From Bigelowiella natans CCMP2755 (taxonomy: Eukaryota > Protista > Cercozoa): a stretch of DNA of 64,000 nt. The notes under the pieces were generated by a model. It worked only from the letters and a program-made list of their open reading frames with translations, made no database searches and was not told the DNA's origin. The stretch is from contig ADNK01000267.1 in NCBI GenBank assembly GCA_000320545.1, forward strand, positions 1 to 64,000. Reading direction: 5' to 3'. Positions 3,702 through 60,163 of the stretch are shown here, one piece after another. The stretch's first letter is position 1; each line of letters begins with the position of its first letter. The position numbers were made by a program, and so were the translations under genes.

Positions 3702-5934
3702 TTAATTATTTGCTGTGGAATAATTCTTATCTGTGTAAGAGAATTCCTCATCGGTGTCTTCGGCAATTCCCTGAGCTGCCTTGTAGGCTCTAATTCGATC
3801 CTCCATTTGTGGTCTGAAGTGCCTAATTAATCCTTGTACAGGCCATGCTGCAGCATCTCCAAGTGCACAGATTGTGTGTCCTTCGATCTCATGTGTCAAT
3901 TCTTCAAGCATATCGATTTCCTCAACCTCCGCTTCGCCAGTTTCCATCCTCTTCATCATTTTGTAAAGCCATGTAGTGCCTTCCCTGCATGGAGTGCATT
4001 GGCCACAAGACTCGTGCTTGTAGAAGTACCTTAAAAAGGACACACACATATCCACACAATTTCAATCCTGTTTTCGCACATGAGTATCCTGTAATTGTAT
4101 GTGTGTTGAAATTAAATTAGTAATGAGTGTTATTATATTTCTTACGATAGTCGGGAGATTGCCCTGATCATGTCGATACTGTTGTCCATGACAGTTACTG
4201 CTGCAGTGCCCAGACCAGATTGAACTCTCTTTAGGTCATCGAAGTCCATGAGCACTTCCTCACAGACGTCCTTCGGGATAACCGGAACAGAGGAACCCCC
4301 AGGAATAATTCCCTAAGTAGCAGTAGTAGTGGTAGGAGCAGTATGAAGGGACAGTAGTGGTAGCAGTAGTATTAAGGGATTTGGCAACTCTAAGGAAGCG
4401 CCATTTTTTAGCCCTATTACCTGCAAGTTGTCCCATCCTCCAATGACCCCCCCACAGTGCTTGTCGATAAGGTCTCTTAATGGAATACTCATCTCTTCTT
4501 CAACAGTAATAGGATTGTTCACATTTCCAGAGATAGCAAAAAGCTTTGTTCCTGAGTTTCCCTTACGACCAAGTCCTGCAAACCTGCGGGTAGAAGGTGC
4601 GTGAGGAAAATACGTCCACGAAAAAGAACTCAATTTACACAAGTCACTGTACTCCCTCGTAGAATGTTATATATGTAACTATCTTCAGACTTGTTCGTTA
4701 ATTGAAGTCGTAGAACTAATTTTAAAGGTGGAGTACACAGCATCGCGAAAATTTTTTAACTCATTTCGAATACCAATCAGCTCCACGTCGTAAAATGGTG
4801 GGGGCCACGGCAACAGTCTCGACATTGGTAACGGTTGTAGGACAGCCATACAGTCCAACATTTGCTGGGAATGGCGGCTTCAATCGTGGTTTGCCAGTGT
4901 TGCCTTCAAGTGATTCAATGAGCCCAGTCTCTTCTCCACAGATGTAGGCCCCGGCACCACGAGCCACATAAATGTCGAATGGAATGCCCGAACCTGCAGC
5001 ATTCTTTCCAAGAAGTCCTTGCTCATAAGCTTCAGCAACTGCTTTCTCCAAAGCCAATGCCTCACGCCAAAATTCGCCGCGAATGTAGATATAAGCAGTG
5101 TGAGCTCCCATTGCAGTCCCCGCAATGACACAACCCTTAGTGTAGAGAAAAATTACATTCAATAACATCATTTTAGTATACTATCATATCACAATAAATT
5201 GCTATAAGGTTTTGATAAGTACATTTGAGTGTCAAATGCAATGCAGTGTTACTAGACTCCAAATAGTTTTCTCTGGACTAGCTTTTGACCTCGAGGAGTT
5301 TTTGAGGCTCGTGACGCATAATTTCACGGTCTTTACAAGTTCCAGGCTCCGACTCATCGGCATTGATTACTAGGTAGTGCGGACGACCATCTGAAGACTG
5401 TGAATATCATAACAGAAAATCATTCGCTTTATCCCGTGGCAACTGAACATTGCAAACCTTTGGCATGAAAGACCACTTTAGTCCGGATGGAAACCCTGCT
5501 CCGCCACGTCCCCGTAGTCCTGACTTCTTTACTTGATCAATGATCCACTCACGGCCAAGATGAAGAAGATCCTTGGTTCTATGCCAGTCACCCTAAGCAA
5601 AGAAAAAGTGAAAATTAGAAAAAAGGGTAGATAAAGTAAAAAATATTAACTCACCCTTTTCATTGCAGCTTTAACGCCTGTATCATATTCACCGTATATG
5701 TTGGTGAAGATACGATCTGAATCGCTCAAGCCCCCATGCACACGAACATGTGTTTCAACAGAGGTACTGAACTTGCTTTCACCTACGTTGTAATCGAAGT
5801 TTTCAGTGAATCATACAGAACGATAAACTGAAACAGTTTGAACCATGAGTAGGTAAAGTTGCAAAGACTCTTGGAGCCCTCGAAAGAAGTGGAGCGACGA
5901 ATCGCAGTGATTTTGCACACTTCACTTGAAGCAT
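3702..5934 (-). CDS. NDUFV1: NADH:ubiquinone oxidoreductase 51 kDa flavoprotein subunit (complex I), about 8 exons, with N-terminal mitochondrial presequence
   Basis: Spliced exons give [96 protein letters not shown] and [17 protein letters not shown] (FMN/NADH and 4Fe-4S N3 motifs). ATG at 5934. Confidence 0.97.
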
Positions 5935-32341: not shown

Positions 32342-33262
32342 CTATTCCTCTTCCAAAACATGGCCTTTTCCGCTGACGTAAATTCCATCGAGGAACTTAC
32401 GAATATCTTTGTTGCGAACCAAAGCAAGGTGGTGCACTTGCGATGTTGCAACAGAAACCTTTGTGATATCATTTCCTTCGAAAACAAGTTCATCCTTTAC
32501 ATCACTACGCCTGCATGTAACACCCTCTGGAAGCTTACACACTTTTGTCATTTTCTGACCAACGAAGTTGCGCACCTCAACCTGATAAGAAGAACGTGCA
32601 AGTTAATAATAAATCAATCATTTTAGGTTGAAATTTGACAATTCTCGCACGATTTCATAGTGTTCGAAGCTTCACTGACCCTGGTTCCATCGTCCTCAAT
32701 TGTAGCTTGAATGGGAAAGTGATTGTAAACTAGACGCATTTTGTACTGGTATCCCCTCTTGAGACCGGTAATCATATTGAGAATCTGAGATTGGATGGTA
32801 CGGACGAGAGCAGCCCCCCGGCGGTTCGACATGTACTTCTTCACGAGGATTTGTTTGCCGTCCTTGCTTTTCTCAATTGTAAGCTAACATTATAATCATA
32901 TATTATTATTAAGTTTGGACGAAGTTCTTTCAAAAATGAAATTCACAGTGTAATTTATCTACGTATATCACCTTTGCGTGCTTGAAGTTTTTCTTGAGCT
33001 CCCCACGCTCATGGGAAATAGTGACAACCCCAGCCTTAATGGTAACTTCGACTGATATAGAGAATATAAACACGTGAGCTTTGGAAAGCTTCATTGCTCG
33101 CTGTCATTTTATTTTTCCCTTCCCCATAACTAAATTCAGTTTCGCAAAAATGAATATTAAAGTTCAATTAATCTTTTTATGGACACTATTTGATTGCGTA
33201 AGATTTGTATACTTACATCCTTCAGGGATGTCGATTTCGCGCTGGACGAGAAGAGTCTTCAT
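32342..33262 (-). CDS. RPL9: 60S ribosomal protein L9 (uL6), 4 exons
   Basis: MKTLLVQREIDIPEG / GELKKNFKH / VRTIQSQILNMITGLKRGYQYKMRLVYNHFPI / VRNFVGQK...KDELVFEGNDITKVS...VRNKDIRKFLDGIYVSGKG. Confidence 0.97.
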
Positions 33263-33919: not shown

Positions 33920-34201
33920 ATGTCGGCGCCCCCTGATTTGGGAGAGGCACGCTCGGAACCGCCTCAGCCTTCTCCTTCCCACGGTCCCAATACTACATCG
34001 AAAAATAAATTGAATCCAACTTGTTGAAGTAGTAGAAATACCTACTACATGCGAGATTGTGATTTCTCATTCGTATCTTGATTTTTAATGTTAATAAACA
34101 ACAAAATGCAAGCGACGTTTTAAGGGGGGATATTAAAGCCTAAGGGGTATTTGAAGGAGATGATTTGATTTCGTCATTATACATAACTTTATGTATAGAA
34201 A

Positions 34202-34252
<51 letters not shown>

Positions 34253-36979
34253 TGTATACTAAATATTTCAGGTACTACCATCTTCTCGTCTTGTTCTTAT
34301 GTAATTTATTACCCTCACTATTTTTCTTCGCATATTTCTCAGCACCTAAACTTCGAGCGGTACATTCAGTCCCAGTGGATCACAGGGGTTCCGACACTAA
34401 ATCGAAGCCATTTGATCTTGTTTACCTTGCTTCTTGCCCCTTAATCCAACGAGCCTATAACGGTGTCACACCAATCGAAGCACTTGATTTGAGAAGGTAA
34501 CTTACGAATGCTGTATAAAATGCATGCCTTGAAATTATAATTTTTGATTCTTTTATGTAATGATTTCCTTTACTCGTCGGTCGTCTAGTGAGCAAAAGAA
34601 CTTCATCACAACCATCGGAAAATCTAGCAAGCGATTCCGTTTCAAGAGAGATTATGCGACTATCCGGAGGCTGGGGACGAATCTAGTACTAGGGTGCAGG
34701 GTTCTCCATTACACTGGGCATGGATTGGAGAACGGACTTGCTTTTGAAGATGAGTGTGGTGTAATGCACATTGTCCAGACTCAGACTCTAAGGGAGCTCA
34801 TGGCTGCAGGGGCCAAGGAGGAAGAAGTCAAGCTGGTATTTGTCGCTGCATGCCACTCTGAATCTGCCGGTAAGGCATTCGTAGAAGCAGGAGTGAAGCA
34901 CGTGATTGCTGTTAAGATATCCGAGAAAGTGGCTGATACTGGAGCTCGACATTTTATGAATTCCTTTTATCTTGCCTTGCTCATGGGGAGAACAGTAGCT
35001 AATGCCTTTAAAATGGCACGAGAAACTCTCAAGGCAATTCCTGACCTACCAACCGCTGACGATGAAGCGAAGAAGTACCTTTTGCTTCCTAAGGAAGGTA
35101 GTTCTTAATCTTACTGTTCAGACTGCTCATGAACGTTTTCTTTTTGCCTTTCAACGCACTCACCTGGATATGGTAGAAACTAGTCTATGAAGCTGCTTTG
35201 CCTCATTTTCTCCGCATCGCTTTGTGCCTTCCCCCCCCCCCCCCCCCTGTGTATGTGTGTGTGTGTGTCCCTTCTTTCAGCGGATCACAATGTTCAAATA
35301 TTTCCCGATTTACCAACGGGAATGGTAGAGGATTGTACAGATAAACGTGCGGTGGAAAATCTGCCAGCTTCTGTGGACCACTTTACTGGGCGCAACTTTG
35401 AAGTTCAGCAAATAGTAGAATACTTTGTCAAAGATCGGTACGTACTAAGATAATAACAATAGAGAGATCTAATAAACATCTTGCGCCATGATAGATGTAT
35501 GTATGTATGTATGTCCTCTTGAATGAAAATGCTACTGATATATGTTCAGGAAGCGTCTAGTGACGATTTGTGGTGAATCTGGAATTGGAAAGACAGCCGT
35601 AGCTATCTATACAGCACGTTTCCTCCTTGAGCGTGGATTGTTCAAAGACGGGGTTATTTTCTTCCGTTTTCAAGGCAAAGGTGATTTTGATGTGGGTCAG
35701 ATCGCTGAGATGATAGCTGAAGGACTTGGCCTAGACATTCCAACACATGGCTTGATCCGAGCGCTTAAGAGTAAAATCCGTAAGAAGGAGCGAGGGGTTC
35801 TGCTGGTGATGGATGGATTGGACGAGTTTGTTTCTTTGCAGGAAAAAGACCGGAAACAATTCACTGTTTTCATCTCTGAGCTCCTCCAAGATTGTAGAGA
35901 TCTTAGAATCCTAGCTACAGCGACCACACCTATTGGAATATCGAGGGGGGTAGAGGAAGTTGAGTTCCCATTGAAGGGCATGAGTGTGTACGACATATGC
36001 AACCTATTCAATAAGCTCACTAACGATAAAGTAACAGCTGAAGTTGTAGGAATTAAGGATGCCTACTTTGCAACTAGAAACGACATATTTCAGGGTCTTG
36101 CTCAGCACAAACTGATAAAAGAGATCGTAAATGGGCATCCTTATCGATGCTGGATGGCAGCAAGACGATTCAACAAACACCCAAAGTTAGACCAGGTGGC
36201 CAAGATTATGTCATATGAGCTGAGAGCGCTTGAGGAGCAGCAGCTTGAGGAAGAACAGTCACGTGCTGCTAAGAATAGTAGGAGAAGAAAAGGATATCAA
36301 CATCCTAGTAGCCAACATACTAGTAGTAGTAGTAGTAATGAGCAGCATTCTCCAAGTAGTAATGACCTCAAGATGGTAGTAGGTGGTGGTAGGAATAACA
36401 GTACAAGTACTAGTAGAAACAATGTAGATGATGTCTATGCCCCAGTTGGTCCAGGGGAGTTTGCAGCATCAGGAAGAGGAGGACACAAGAGCAGCAGCAG
36501 CAGCAGCAGTAGTAGCACGATTGTGTAAGCACCAACACTGAACATCTCTCGTCTATTACTACTAATTCTGATGTTGTGATTGATGACAATCATAAGTGTA
36601 TGATGATGCATTATCTATCAATTAACACCATGAAATAATACGATGATGTAAACAACAACAACAACTACTACTACTACTACTTTTCTCCTTCTACTGGTTT
36701 CGATGTTGTCCTAACGGCTGTCCATTTAATAATATATGACGAGTATACTAATAATGTCACAAATACTACTGCTAATACCAACTAGTATGTTCGCTCTTAT
36801 CGTATTTGAAGTTATCCTTCCTCCAAAAAATGATGATGGCCACAAATCACCACAAATACCTCATCATCATCAATCATCTTTCCTCCCTTCTAGGACGAGA
36901 GAAGAACTTGACTATGAAAACAAGATTAGAACCATCCTCTCGCAGGAGGCAAGAGTCTTTTGGGATAGTTTCAAGGTGC

Positions 36980-37021
<42 letters not shown>

Positions 37022-38353
37022 CAATAGTAGTAGCACGCAATAACTACAACTACCACTTGAAGGTATAAGCGTCCTCCTCCTCCTCCTCCTCCTCCTCCTC
37101 CTCCTTCTCTTTCTCTTACTACTACTACTAATAATAATAATAATAATAATGATGATAATAATACCACAATCTCTATCACAGCCACGAATGGAAACTAATG
37201 ATGATAATAATACCACAATCTCTATCACAGCCACGAATGGAAACTAATGATGATAATAATACCACAATCTCTATCACAGCCACGAATGGAAACTAGCTGG
37301 GAAAGCTTCAAAAGAAGGCTTAATTCTCACTTCAAGGCATACACCGGAGTAACCAGGGGGCTAGATGAACATGACATTCACTCTGCAAGCCAATTTGTGC
37401 AAAAATTTGCGAGAAGGAAGAATATACAGTAATAATTGAGAATACTACTTATTGCAATGTTGTATGAAAATGATGAGACATGATAAAGCAGCAGACGATG
37501 TTAGAATGTTTTCCTCCTTTCCTCCTTCATGATCATATCAATCTTATCTTGATGTTGTCATCATCAGAATTAGCCATAAAGGCCTTTCTGTGTCAGCATT
37601 CAATGTATGGTGGGAGATGTGGTACACCCCATTGGTAAAGACCATTCAACGAATAAGCAAGATTTGGGACAATAACTACATTAAGGGGGTAGCGTACGAC
37701 AAGAACAGTGTCAGAAATAGCATTGTAGGTGGGCCTGTAGGAACCTTTATGTTGCGCCTAAGTGGTAATAACCCTGGCTGCATAGTGCTGGGATTTGTCG
37801 GCAGCGACAGGCCCAAGAAAATTCTTCATATTCTGATAGATGGGTACTAGATGATATATTATAAGTATGGATTGATCATAGCGACGATGACGATGATGAT
37901 GATGATGATGATGATGATAATGACAATGACGACGATGATGATGATGAGAATAGCGACGATTTTTCGTCCTTGTGCTTCTCTATCGCCATTCGTTGTGGAT
38001 ATTGACGAGGGGGGCAGGGAGAGAGAGAGAGAGAGTACTTGCTTAACGTCAGATGAGGCTGCTATGCTCTAACAATATAAAGCTTCTTCTGTTGGCTTAA
38101 TCAATCAATATTTTCTGTTGTGTTCATTTCACGCAGACGTCACAGTGATTTCAAGATCAAATTTGATGATGGAAAGTCACAAAGCTATGCGAGGCTTGAG
38201 GATCTTGTGCTTCAATGCAAACGCGTAACCATCCTGCACCCCAATGTAGCAAAACATGCTGCCTTTGGGAATTTGATGATAAATGATGATCACCAAAGTC
38301 GTAGTAGTAGTGGTCAATATGATTTCGCTTGTGACGATGAAGGACCTTCATAG
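33920..38353 (+). CDS. CHAT (caspase-like) protease - STAND/NB-ARC-like P-loop NTPase - STAT-type linker/SH2 domain protein, about 9 exons
   Basis: CHAT: VLHYTGHG (34707), LAFEDECG, LVFVAACHSE (Cys at 34851), FMNSFYLAL. STAND: NLPASVDHFTGRNFE, Walker A GESGIGKT (35572), FKDGVIF, Walker B LLVMDGLDE (35800), ILATATTP, VNGHP. SH2: WDNNYIKG...GPVGTFMLRLSGNNPGCIVLGFV...ILHILI...YARLEDLV. ATG at 33920 is inferred. Confidence 0.88.
37147..37293 (+). repeat. 49 bp tandem repeat x3 spanning a 3' splice site
   Basis: TAATGATGATAATAATACCACAATCTCTATCACAG|CCACGAATGGAAAC at 37147, 37196 and 37245. Confidence 0.92.
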
Positions 38354-58175: not shown

Positions 58176-58961
58176 TCATTTTTTAGACGATTTTTTGTCC
58201 GTTTTATCCTTCTTACCCATTAGAGCATCAATAAGTTCTCTGAGAGGTTCTTGTTCATGGCTGGTGATGAGCTGCAACACAAATATTAGACACAAAAAAG
58301 AGCAAAGTATAAATCCGCACACCTTGAATTCGGCCACGAAGTAGATGAAATGCTTGAAGCACGTATTCCTGCGAAGTAACGAAACATTAAGAAAATACGT
58401 ACTTCTGACTTGACAAAATATTTCTTACAGGTGTGCCTCAGCTCCCAAGCCAATGATCTTCTTAAAATGTGAATGATAGATGTGGGCATACACACGAAAT
58501 AGCCTCTTGAAGATTGTCTTCACGATGTTAAAAAAATTTTTTGGAAAAGGGGTTCCAAGTTGGAGGGGGAATATGCTTTCATCATTGAGCTGGCCCTCGA
58601 CCCAAGTCATCAAATGATCCACGTATTCAGGAGCGTTGCACTTTATCGGTTTCTTAACTTTTACTCCATCTGCCCAGAGGTATTCATATTTCGAACCAGC
58701 ATTCATCACAGGGCAATTGTCAGGAGTGCAATAGTCTGTTATAGTTCCATAAAGAAGACTGATCTCGTTGAAGAAATCGACGGTATTAACTGCCAACCAT
58801 TCGTTAAGATCCTCGCCCTTCGGAAGAACTACTGCGCTTCTCATGTTTCCGCTTCCCAAAGTTGCTTTGGCATAGTCAGAAAGTTTCTTACGCTTTTCCT
58901 TTTTGTGTGTCTTCAAAGGTTTGAAAGTCTTGTTCCGTGATGATCTCAGAAAAGAGAACAT
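58176..58961 (-). CDS. MOB1: MOB kinase activator 1, 3 coding exons
   Basis: ATLGSGNMRSAVVLPKGEDLNEWLAVNTVDFFNEISLLYGT, CPVMNAGSKYEYLWADG, FKRLFRVYAHIYHSHF, EAHL/NTCFKHFIYFVAEF/LI..EQEPLRELI. Confidence 0.97.
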
Positions 58962-60163
58962 CTGACCATGAAAGATTCAAAACGTGATGATTTTTTTCAG
59001 AATCAACTTCGGAGAATTGGCACAGGAAAATATTGATTCTACATAGTCAGTAAGCTTTGAGAAAATTTATTGATTGAAATTCAGGTACAATGGAATTTAA
59101 TGCGAAGTGAACATCTGCGGAATAGTTTCAGTTGTACTAAAAAGAACTAACGTTCCGCATTTCAATTGTTAGCACGAATACTGCAACCTCTTCTAGTTAC
59201 GAACAACAACGTAGGAAGGATTTAGGATTTCTTTTTTTTTTGCAACTCATCATCTTTGACATCATGGTGAATCATCTTCATCATTCTATGTTCCTTCGTA
59301 CATTCAGGCAAGGAGCAGCAACACACCTCTCGTCTATCAGAATCTGTTTATCACGTCAGACCAAAATCAGCACTTTCAATATGACCATCAAGGAGATAAT
59401 GTAGGCCAATTATTGTTGTCGAGATCTACAATTCTTGTCGTATGCGAGAATAATTATCTCGTCGTATCCGTTCTCGTGAAAAGGCCAAAACAGGAAAAAC
59501 ATTTCGTCATGCTCGAAGATTTAACGAAATGTCCTGCAAATGGAATATTTTCATCCTTTTTTATGTCAAATAAATTTGGAGTAATAATAATGATACGGAA
59601 TATTTCGAAGAATAAAAATCTTGACTGCATGTAGATGTTTCCAGGTGTAGATCTACATTCATGCTGTTTTTTCCTAGTTTTTCTTTGTCTGAAAACAAAG
59701 AAGCAGATGATTGTCCAGTTCTCAATGATGATCTAGTTAGTGATAGTCACTGTGAGACGTTGTCGTTGCACAAATATTCTGGGCGTTTCTTTCCTAGAAC
59801 AGCACATAATTTAACACACAATCAGATCTATCTACCGGTTCCTACAGGGCCGAGAAGAAAGAAGCCTTTTGTTTGTCATAATCCGCGATGGTAATACATG
59901 GTGGTCCCCCCCCCCCCCTCCCAGACCACAACGTACCCGTTTGTAGAACATAATTTAAACTAACTTCATTTTTGCATGTATTTCGAATTAAAAATGTAGA
60001 TCTTCAATTTTGGCCTAACACGTTGAATTTCTAGATAGATTAATTTGCATTATTTCTTCACAGAGCACCGTCCTGTCGTCTTGATGATCGATGATGTTCC
60101 ATTTTTCTCCTGGAACAGAAGAACCTTACACTAAATCTACAACGCTAATCGACGTTGCTTGCG

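Follow-up and report, generated by a model that had tools for sequence, protein, structure and literature searches.

A CHAT protease, an NTPase and a STAT-type SH2 module in one chain: a conserved protist family that suggests phosphotyrosine-switched proteolysis

SH2 domains are known on kinases, phosphatases, adaptors, ubiquitin ligases, GTPase regulators, lipid enzymes and STATs. We know of no SH2 domain on a protease, and the literature searched (most subscription journals lie outside that search) yielded no SH2–protease combination. In NLRs, the winged helix is the part that locks ADP and forms the on/off switch. Among CHAT enzymes, the SAVED-CHAT protease is activated by ligand-driven oligomerization (bioRxiv 10.1101/2023.06.23.546230). 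Here we analyze a gene at 33920-38353 of a stretch of 64,000 nucleotides from Bigelowiella natans CCMP2755 (contig ADNK01000267.1, positions 1 to 64,000, forward strand; this whole stretch is called the window). A CHAT domain, a STAND-type NTPase and a STAT-type linker-SH2 module are encoded in one chain, a combination which suggests that tyrosine phosphorylation can directly switch on a protease. If this is true, the SH2-protease would be a new output class for phosphotyrosine signaling.

The gene consists of nine exons, all with GT-AG introns, which join into a single open frame of 896 amino acids. A sequence-only reading of the same DNA had proposed a spliced frame with CHAT, STAND NTPase and SH2 parts, and all the motifs that it listed are present in this one frame; the gene and its architecture are confirmed as genuine. 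The exon model was joined in silico for reading frame and for comparison of 25-residue junction flanks with ortholog proteins, and the alternative splice choices tested all stay in frame (860-909 amino acids). At six of the eight junctions, the alignment with transcript-derived orthologs runs through without a break. Intron 1 is uncertain, with a weak donor and no ortholog backing at its junction. The acceptor of intron 5 is likewise uncertain (36786, 36812 or 36894), the last of these having the best pyrimidine tract and the best fit to the ortholog spacing. The Pfam and homology searches were run exon by exon, not on the spliced model. CHAT (cut-off 24 bits) and NACHT scored above the cut-off, while STAT_linker and SH2 fell below it because introns split both of these domains. 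A perfect 49-bp tandem repeat in three copies (37147-37295) duplicates the acceptor of exon 7, and splicing at either upstream copy would lead to a stop at residue 705 with loss of the SH2.

That two adjacent genes, one for CHAT-NTPase and one for linker-SH2, have been wrongly joined might be supposed from the stop codon just past the donor of exon 5. We rejected this explanation and give it almost no weight. Several orthologs are complete transcripts (Partenskyella, Norrisiella and others), other orthologs are single intronless open reading frames (ORFs) lying among housekeeping genes on eukaryotic contigs, and both kinds hold all three parts, which leaves next to no room for separate genes. 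Exon 6 has no homology-supported start of its own, and two paralogs share the layout. The SH2 exons thus belong to the same polypeptide as the CHAT-NTPase exons, as had been predicted.

The relatives were collected by searching the CHAT exon against 1.84 billion representatives and applying a linker-SH2 profile to the best 150 matches, 22 of which have CHAT, NTPase and linker-SH2 in one chain. The holders include Partenskyella glossopodia, Norrisiella sphaerica, Amorphochlora amoebiformis (GAB5364538.1), Mataza sp. D1, Leptophrys vorax, Mantamonas plastica and Nannochloropsis oceanica, and the family is also found in picoeukaryotes. Norrisiella sphaerica has two family genes, one of them (P0151) with a tandem linker-SH2. 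The family spans Rhizaria, stramenopiles and CRuMs and is not unique to B. natans; a fusion confined to one organism was accordingly rejected. Its genes are conserved and low-copy, unlike the expanded TPR paralogs. The sequence-only reading knew of no characterized protein with this architecture. This stands insofar as no description of the family was found in the literature searched, whereas the architecture itself proves to be a family across three groups. Where a source names its proteins, they are labeled hypothetical or left without a function, and PMC8195603 mentions SH2 twice, both times for a different family. This is, apparently, a conserved protist family that has so far gone undescribed. 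In a FastTree tree the SH2 members group apart from the TPR members with a support of only 47, and a single origin of the SH2 members is therefore not shown.

The CHAT dyad of the window protein is intact, as had been claimed for it, with His117 in a His-Gly and Cys161 in an Ala-Cys context. Across the family the His is invariant or nearly so and the Cys is nearly invariant, the Nannochloropsis clade being the exception. Structures were predicted as monomers from the orthologs P0002 (whole protein) and P0167 (C-terminal part) in place of the window protein. The P0002 model has three folded units at a mean predicted local distance difference test score (pLDDT) of 85. Its residues 9-220 match the SAVED-CHAT structure 8tl0 (Z 24.7, root-mean-square deviation 2.3, 193 residues aligned). 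Its residues 229-483 match Apaf-1 112-366 (Z 15.0) over 220 residues that make up the nucleotide-binding domain (NBD) and helical domain 1 (HD1). Residues 489-519 are disordered, and the remainder matches STATs (Z 16-17.6). The window protein is a member of the CHAT family (PF12770), but it lacks several of the features that define an NLR.

The NTPase bears on the earlier proposal that the protein is a genuine NLR or apoptosome. In that proposal the SH2 would replace the repeat sensor and free an ADP-locked state, and the resulting ring would cleave a gasdermin-like death effector. The fold resembles those of Apaf-1, CED-4 and plant NLRs (Z 13-15), and both the bacterial kin and paralogs in the genome are CHAT-NTPase-TPR receptors. 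Across the family the FxGR Arg never varies, and GK[ST], the Walker B Asp and GxP show little or no variation; nucleotide binding is therefore probably retained. The parts of an NLR switch are another matter. No winged-helix domain follows HD1 in the P0002 model, where the Apaf-1 match ends at 347-366 and is succeeded by disorder and then the STAT linker. The sensor-1 Arg of the T[ST]R motif is not present in the window copy, which reads ILATAT (sensor-1 strand at 35917), and it occurs in about 8 of 18 family rows, being missing from about half of the family. The window protein has no C-terminal LRR, WD40, TPR or ankyrin sensor, the linker-SH2 standing there instead. The genes are conserved, low-copy and set amid housekeeping genes, in contrast to the expanded TPR paralogs. 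The gasdermin-like substrates that the sequence-only reading had suggested looking for did not appear: PF04598 has no match in the genome and none evident in the window, although divergent or intron-split gasdermins could escape such a search. A PADLOC search also gave no match. The family NTPase is thus a shortened CHAT-NBD-HD1 core and not a full NLR. A role as an apoptosome or through gasdermin is unsupported, and the NLR proposal as a whole is, in our estimation, improbable.

The C-terminal module is of the STAT type. The linker-SH2 profile matches Dictyostelium STATa with an E of 1.7e-30, and the P0167 C-terminal part (pLDDT 93.7) matches STAT6 (Z 17.0) and Dictyostelium STATa (Z 16.8), compared to 12 or less for Src-type SH2s. 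This ortholog, from Norrisiella, is the closest to the window gene, with 61% identity over exon 8. All 22 linker-SH2 rows match PF00017; Arg bB5 and Ser bB7 are invariant among them, and aA2 is Lys or Arg in most. In the window protein the phosphate-pocket residues are Lys778 (aA2) and Arg796 (bB5). The ESM Atlas returned only SH2 plus STAT-linker clusters (scores below 0.9) and bacterial CHAT-NTPase clusters, and a word-based search with the P0002 SH2 region found only P0002 itself. To judge from these alignments and ortholog models, the window C-terminus is a STAT-type linker-SH2 with an intact predicted phosphate pocket, which upholds the earlier call of a helical linker and SH2 domain with its phosphotyrosine-binding Arg. 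The window protein belongs to the STAT-type SH2 family, and it lacks the features that define STAT transcription factors.

A candidate ligand for this pocket lies in the low-complexity linker. The chlorarachniophyte linkers are otherwise unalignable (17-39% pairwise identity), and six of seven contain the motif Y-x-P-[VM]-x4-F, at a shuffle frequency of at most 0.002 in each. In the window protein the motif Tyr is Tyr591, with acidic residues just before it. Kinase sites to which SH2 domains bind typically have acidic residues before the Tyr and a hydrophobic residue three after it. We also considered a STAT-like Tyr behind the SH2 and rejected it as not conserved; the tails of the family share an acidic-G-P-S ending instead. 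An acidic tail with a penultimate Pro (P-x end) is seen in 13 of 25 family members compared to 10 of 140 other proteins, and it is kept even behind long spacers. This persistence would suit an SH2 pocket that binds a ligand other than phosphotyrosine, either phosphoserine or phosphothreonine or the acidic tail of the protein itself, and that has a structural or autoinhibitory role. The SH2 of Spt6 is known to take non-tyrosine ligands. We regard this explanation as distinctly improbable, for the closest structures are those of STATs, which are phosphotyrosine binders, the linker Tyr motif is conserved, tyrosine-kinase-type enzymes are present, and the C-terminal tail is unstructured in the P0002 model.

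Those enzymes were found in genome searches of the 91.4 Mb assembly (3736 contigs, the window being contig C3470), in which gene counts are lower bounds. Five of the ten best kinase matches have HRD[IV]ACRN catalytic loops and tyrosine-kinase-type P+1 loops. Tyrosine-kinase-type loops occur in L030, L031, L033, L034, L036 and L038, some with N-terminal hydrophobic segments. These kinases are candidate writers, so that a writer for a phosphotyrosine signal plausibly exists. At least four SH2 genes were detected, three of the four being CHAT-NTPase-SH2 fusions; at least three genes of the latter kind are present (contigs C3470, C1445 and C1779). Several exons of the C1779 paralog are 100% identical to a JGI Bigna1 model. 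The public model for this paralog (L024, C1779:3000-12900), P0004 (Bigna1 139177), is seemingly fused to the upstream gene and shortened, and a second linker-SH2 match at C1779:14427-14549 points to a module in tandem, like that of Norrisiella P0151. In total, the genome showed more than 20 CHAT-like loci. Five of them (L011, L012, L014, L015 and L016) are expanded CHAT-NTPase-NTPase-TPR genes; in L016 the TPR array is followed, in frame, by a further CHAT-NTPase, and L014 has Tyr-to-His/Cys changes.

The core itself is found in other settings. In the bacterial relatives with the same CHAT-NTPase core, about 220 residues lie between the NTPase and the TPRs. The C600 paralog stops directly after HD1, and an ortholog of the C1445 paralog has an added receiver domain. 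A large related clade has the CHAT-NBD-HD1 core in a C-terminal position behind FHA, LRR or SPRY domains, some of the ends possibly being gene-calling artifacts, and further protist relatives carry N-terminal receiver or SAM domains. In P0021, P0082, P0135 and P0044 the core, with an intact His motif, is fused to FHA, a phosphothreonine reader, or to the receiver, which is phosphoaspartate-based. These fusions are possibly sister systems of phosphorylation-gated proteases. By its domain contexts, the core appears to have been coupled repeatedly to signal readers, three of them readers of phosphorylation.

We propose, at a probability of roughly 0.5, that phosphotyrosine–SH2 contacts in trans, made in the manner of STATs, cluster and activate a cytosolic caspase-like protease. 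The resting monomer would be inactive. A tyrosine-kinase-type enzyme would phosphorylate the protein's own linker Tyr (Tyr591) in chlorarachniophytes; in members that have no linker Tyr, the phosphorylated site may lie on a receptor or scaffold instead. SH2–phosphotyrosine contacts in trans would then join protomers as in STAT dimers, the truncated NTPase acting as a nucleotide-bound spacer or assembly surface and not as an NLR-style lock. Proximity would order the CHAT active sites, much as SAVED-CHAT is ordered by oligomerization. A specific cellular target would then be cut, with an outcome that may lie in defense, death or development. From the domain inventory and the conserved residues we infer the binding, phosphorylation, assembly, activity and substrate that this sequence of events calls for. 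We favor it because the dyad is conserved, the CHAT fold is like that of SAVED-CHAT, and the linker-SH2 is of the STAT type with an invariant pocket; because the Tyr motif of the linker has persisted although its flanks have diverged; because the genome has tyrosine-kinase-type kinases and three of its four detected SH2 genes are fusions of this kind; and because relatives join the same core to the phospho-readers FHA and receiver. The protein may thus work like a signal-gated CHAT protease, as its sequence and the ortholog models lead us to infer.

Four observations weigh against trans-activation. The Nannochloropsis clade (P0091, P0179; N. oceanica VYU27_002850) has lost both catalytic residues and keeps the architecture and the SH2 Arg, so that the architecture can persist without proteolysis; by these residues its member is a predicted pseudo-protease, in a genetically tractable alga. 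Many members outside the chlorarachniophytes, and the C1445 paralog, are without the linker Tyr, and the self-ligand is therefore not universal. The candidate phosphotyrosine precedes the linker domain, whereas in STATs it comes after the SH2. The genome yielded a single, weak match to a tyrosine phosphatase; an eraser is thus weakly seen. The missing linker Tyr would be expected if the SH2 were a targeting device, which brings an otherwise regulated protease to tyrosine-phosphorylated substrates (activated receptor kinases, for example) that are cleaved to end or relay a signal; the protein's own linker Tyr, where present, may then be an inhibitory ligand in cis, as in Src. The linker-SH2 module also resembles the recruiting unit of Cbl (EF-hand/SH2), and the NTPase retains only part of its switch. 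We hold targeting to be unlikely, as CHAT enzymes studied to date are activated by oligomerization or allostery, and the conserved FxGR, GK[ST], Walker B Asp and GxP suggest that assembly or nucleotide state matters.

A wider form of the trans-activation proposal is offered only tentatively, and the odds are against it. It would make the protein an old device common to several protist supergroups, in which phosphorylation of its own linker leads to reciprocal STAT-like SH2 dimers and these turn on the caspase-like protease. This would be a new class of phosphotyrosine output, which would have arisen when a STAT linker-SH2 was added to a CHAT-STAND core of bacterial type, and in B. natans it would be the chief reader of tyrosine-kinase signals. 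As for the role of phosphotyrosine in lineages without STATs, a conserved SH2-protease found beyond animals and amoebae offers a concrete and testable answer. A single-chain protease switched by phosphotyrosine, if true, would also be a useful part for synthetic biology.

The coordinates of the gene are collected in Table 1. The CHAT gene has a head-to-head neighbor about 800 bases away, a spliced minus-strand gene at 32342-33094 that we take, from its resemblance, to encode ribosomal protein L9. Minus-strand exons at 4764-5180 and 58428-58976 presumably belong to genes for the complex I 51 kDa subunit and MOB1, which they resemble; these have no connection with the CHAT-NTPase-SH2 gene.

Table 1. 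Exons and encoded features of the CHAT-NTPase-SH2 gene (window coordinates)
Feature	Position	Strand	Content
Exon 1	33920..33983	+	ATG, Pro-rich leader; donor GTCCCA after 33983 or GTTGAA after 34022, both in frame
Exon 2	34343..34496	+	CHAT first strand and helix; matches N-termini of orthologs P0001, P0002, P0165
Exon 3	34589..35097	+	CHAT catalytic core; His117 at 34719, Cys161 at 34851; Pfam CHAT 43.1 bits
Exon 4	35281..35437	+	CHAT-NTPase connector and FxGR motif (FTGR at 35382)
Exon 5, 5' part	35550..36225	+	STAND-type nucleotide-binding domain and helical domain 1; Walker A Lys 35590, Walker B Asp 35812, GHP (GxP) 36133; Pfam NACHT 46.5 bits
Exon 5, 3' part	36226..36524	+	Low-complexity linker; Y-x-P-[VM]-x4-F motif, Tyr591 at 36436; candidate phosphorylation site/SH2 ligand
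Exon 6	36786..36975	+	Linker end and first helices of STAT-type linker domain; acceptor perhaps 36894 or 36812
Exon 7	37280..37428	+	STAT-type linker domain; Pfam STAT_linker E 0.021; acceptor inside third copy of the 49-bp tandem repeat
Exon 8	37568..37843	+	Linker-domain end and SH2 core; Lys aA2 37701, Arg bB5 37755, Ser bB7; Pfam SH2 E 0.0018
Exon 9	38137..38353	+	SH2 C-terminal part, acidic tail D-D-E-G-P-S (38333-38350), stop codon; match E 4.9e-11

The sequence-only reading had picked up neither the Tyr motif of the linker, which points to a STAT-like mechanism, nor the tail motif; both were tested in this analysis, along with the absence of a winged helix and the relatives that carry FHA or receiver domains. 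Among the systems already known, the protease is structurally closest to SAVED-CHAT of Haliangium ochraceum (PDB 8tl0; Z 24.7), which shares the His-Cys dyad and a signal-reading domain in the same chain. SAVED-CHAT is activated by ligand-driven oligomerization, a likeness that is proposed for the window protein. It differs in being part of a CRISPR system, in lacking an NTPase and in its sensor, which is SAVED and recognizes cA3, whereas the sensor of the window protein is an SH2. STATs (STAT6, STAT5, Dictyostelium STATa) and other linker-SH2 proteins share the linker and SH2 unit of about 186 residues (Z 17) and the same phosphate-pocket residues. Unlike STATs, the window protein has no coiled-coil or DNA-binding domain; it has a protease output, CHAT and NTPase upstream, and its candidate Tyr before the SH2. 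The STAND and NLR proteins (Apaf-1, CED-4 and plant NLRs, and the bacterial and fungal CHAT-NACHT-TPR proteins) have in common with it an N-terminal effector, FxGR, Walker A and B, GxP, the NBD and HD1 folds and an output of the caspase superfamily, and bacterial CHAT-NTPase-TPR proteins such as P0026 (Thermoanaerobaculia) are close to the family in sequence. The family departs from them in having no winged helix, second helical domain or repeat sensor, and often no sensor-1 Arg. The protist CHAT-NTPase proteins with N-terminal FHA, receiver, LRR, SPRY or SAM domains have the same CHAT-NBD-HD1 core, several ending right after HD1, and differ in that their sensor is N-terminal and is not an SH2. 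A STAND core that does without winged helix and repeats and recurs together with SH2, FHA and receiver domains implies that phosphorylation-gated proteolysis may be a general theme in protists.

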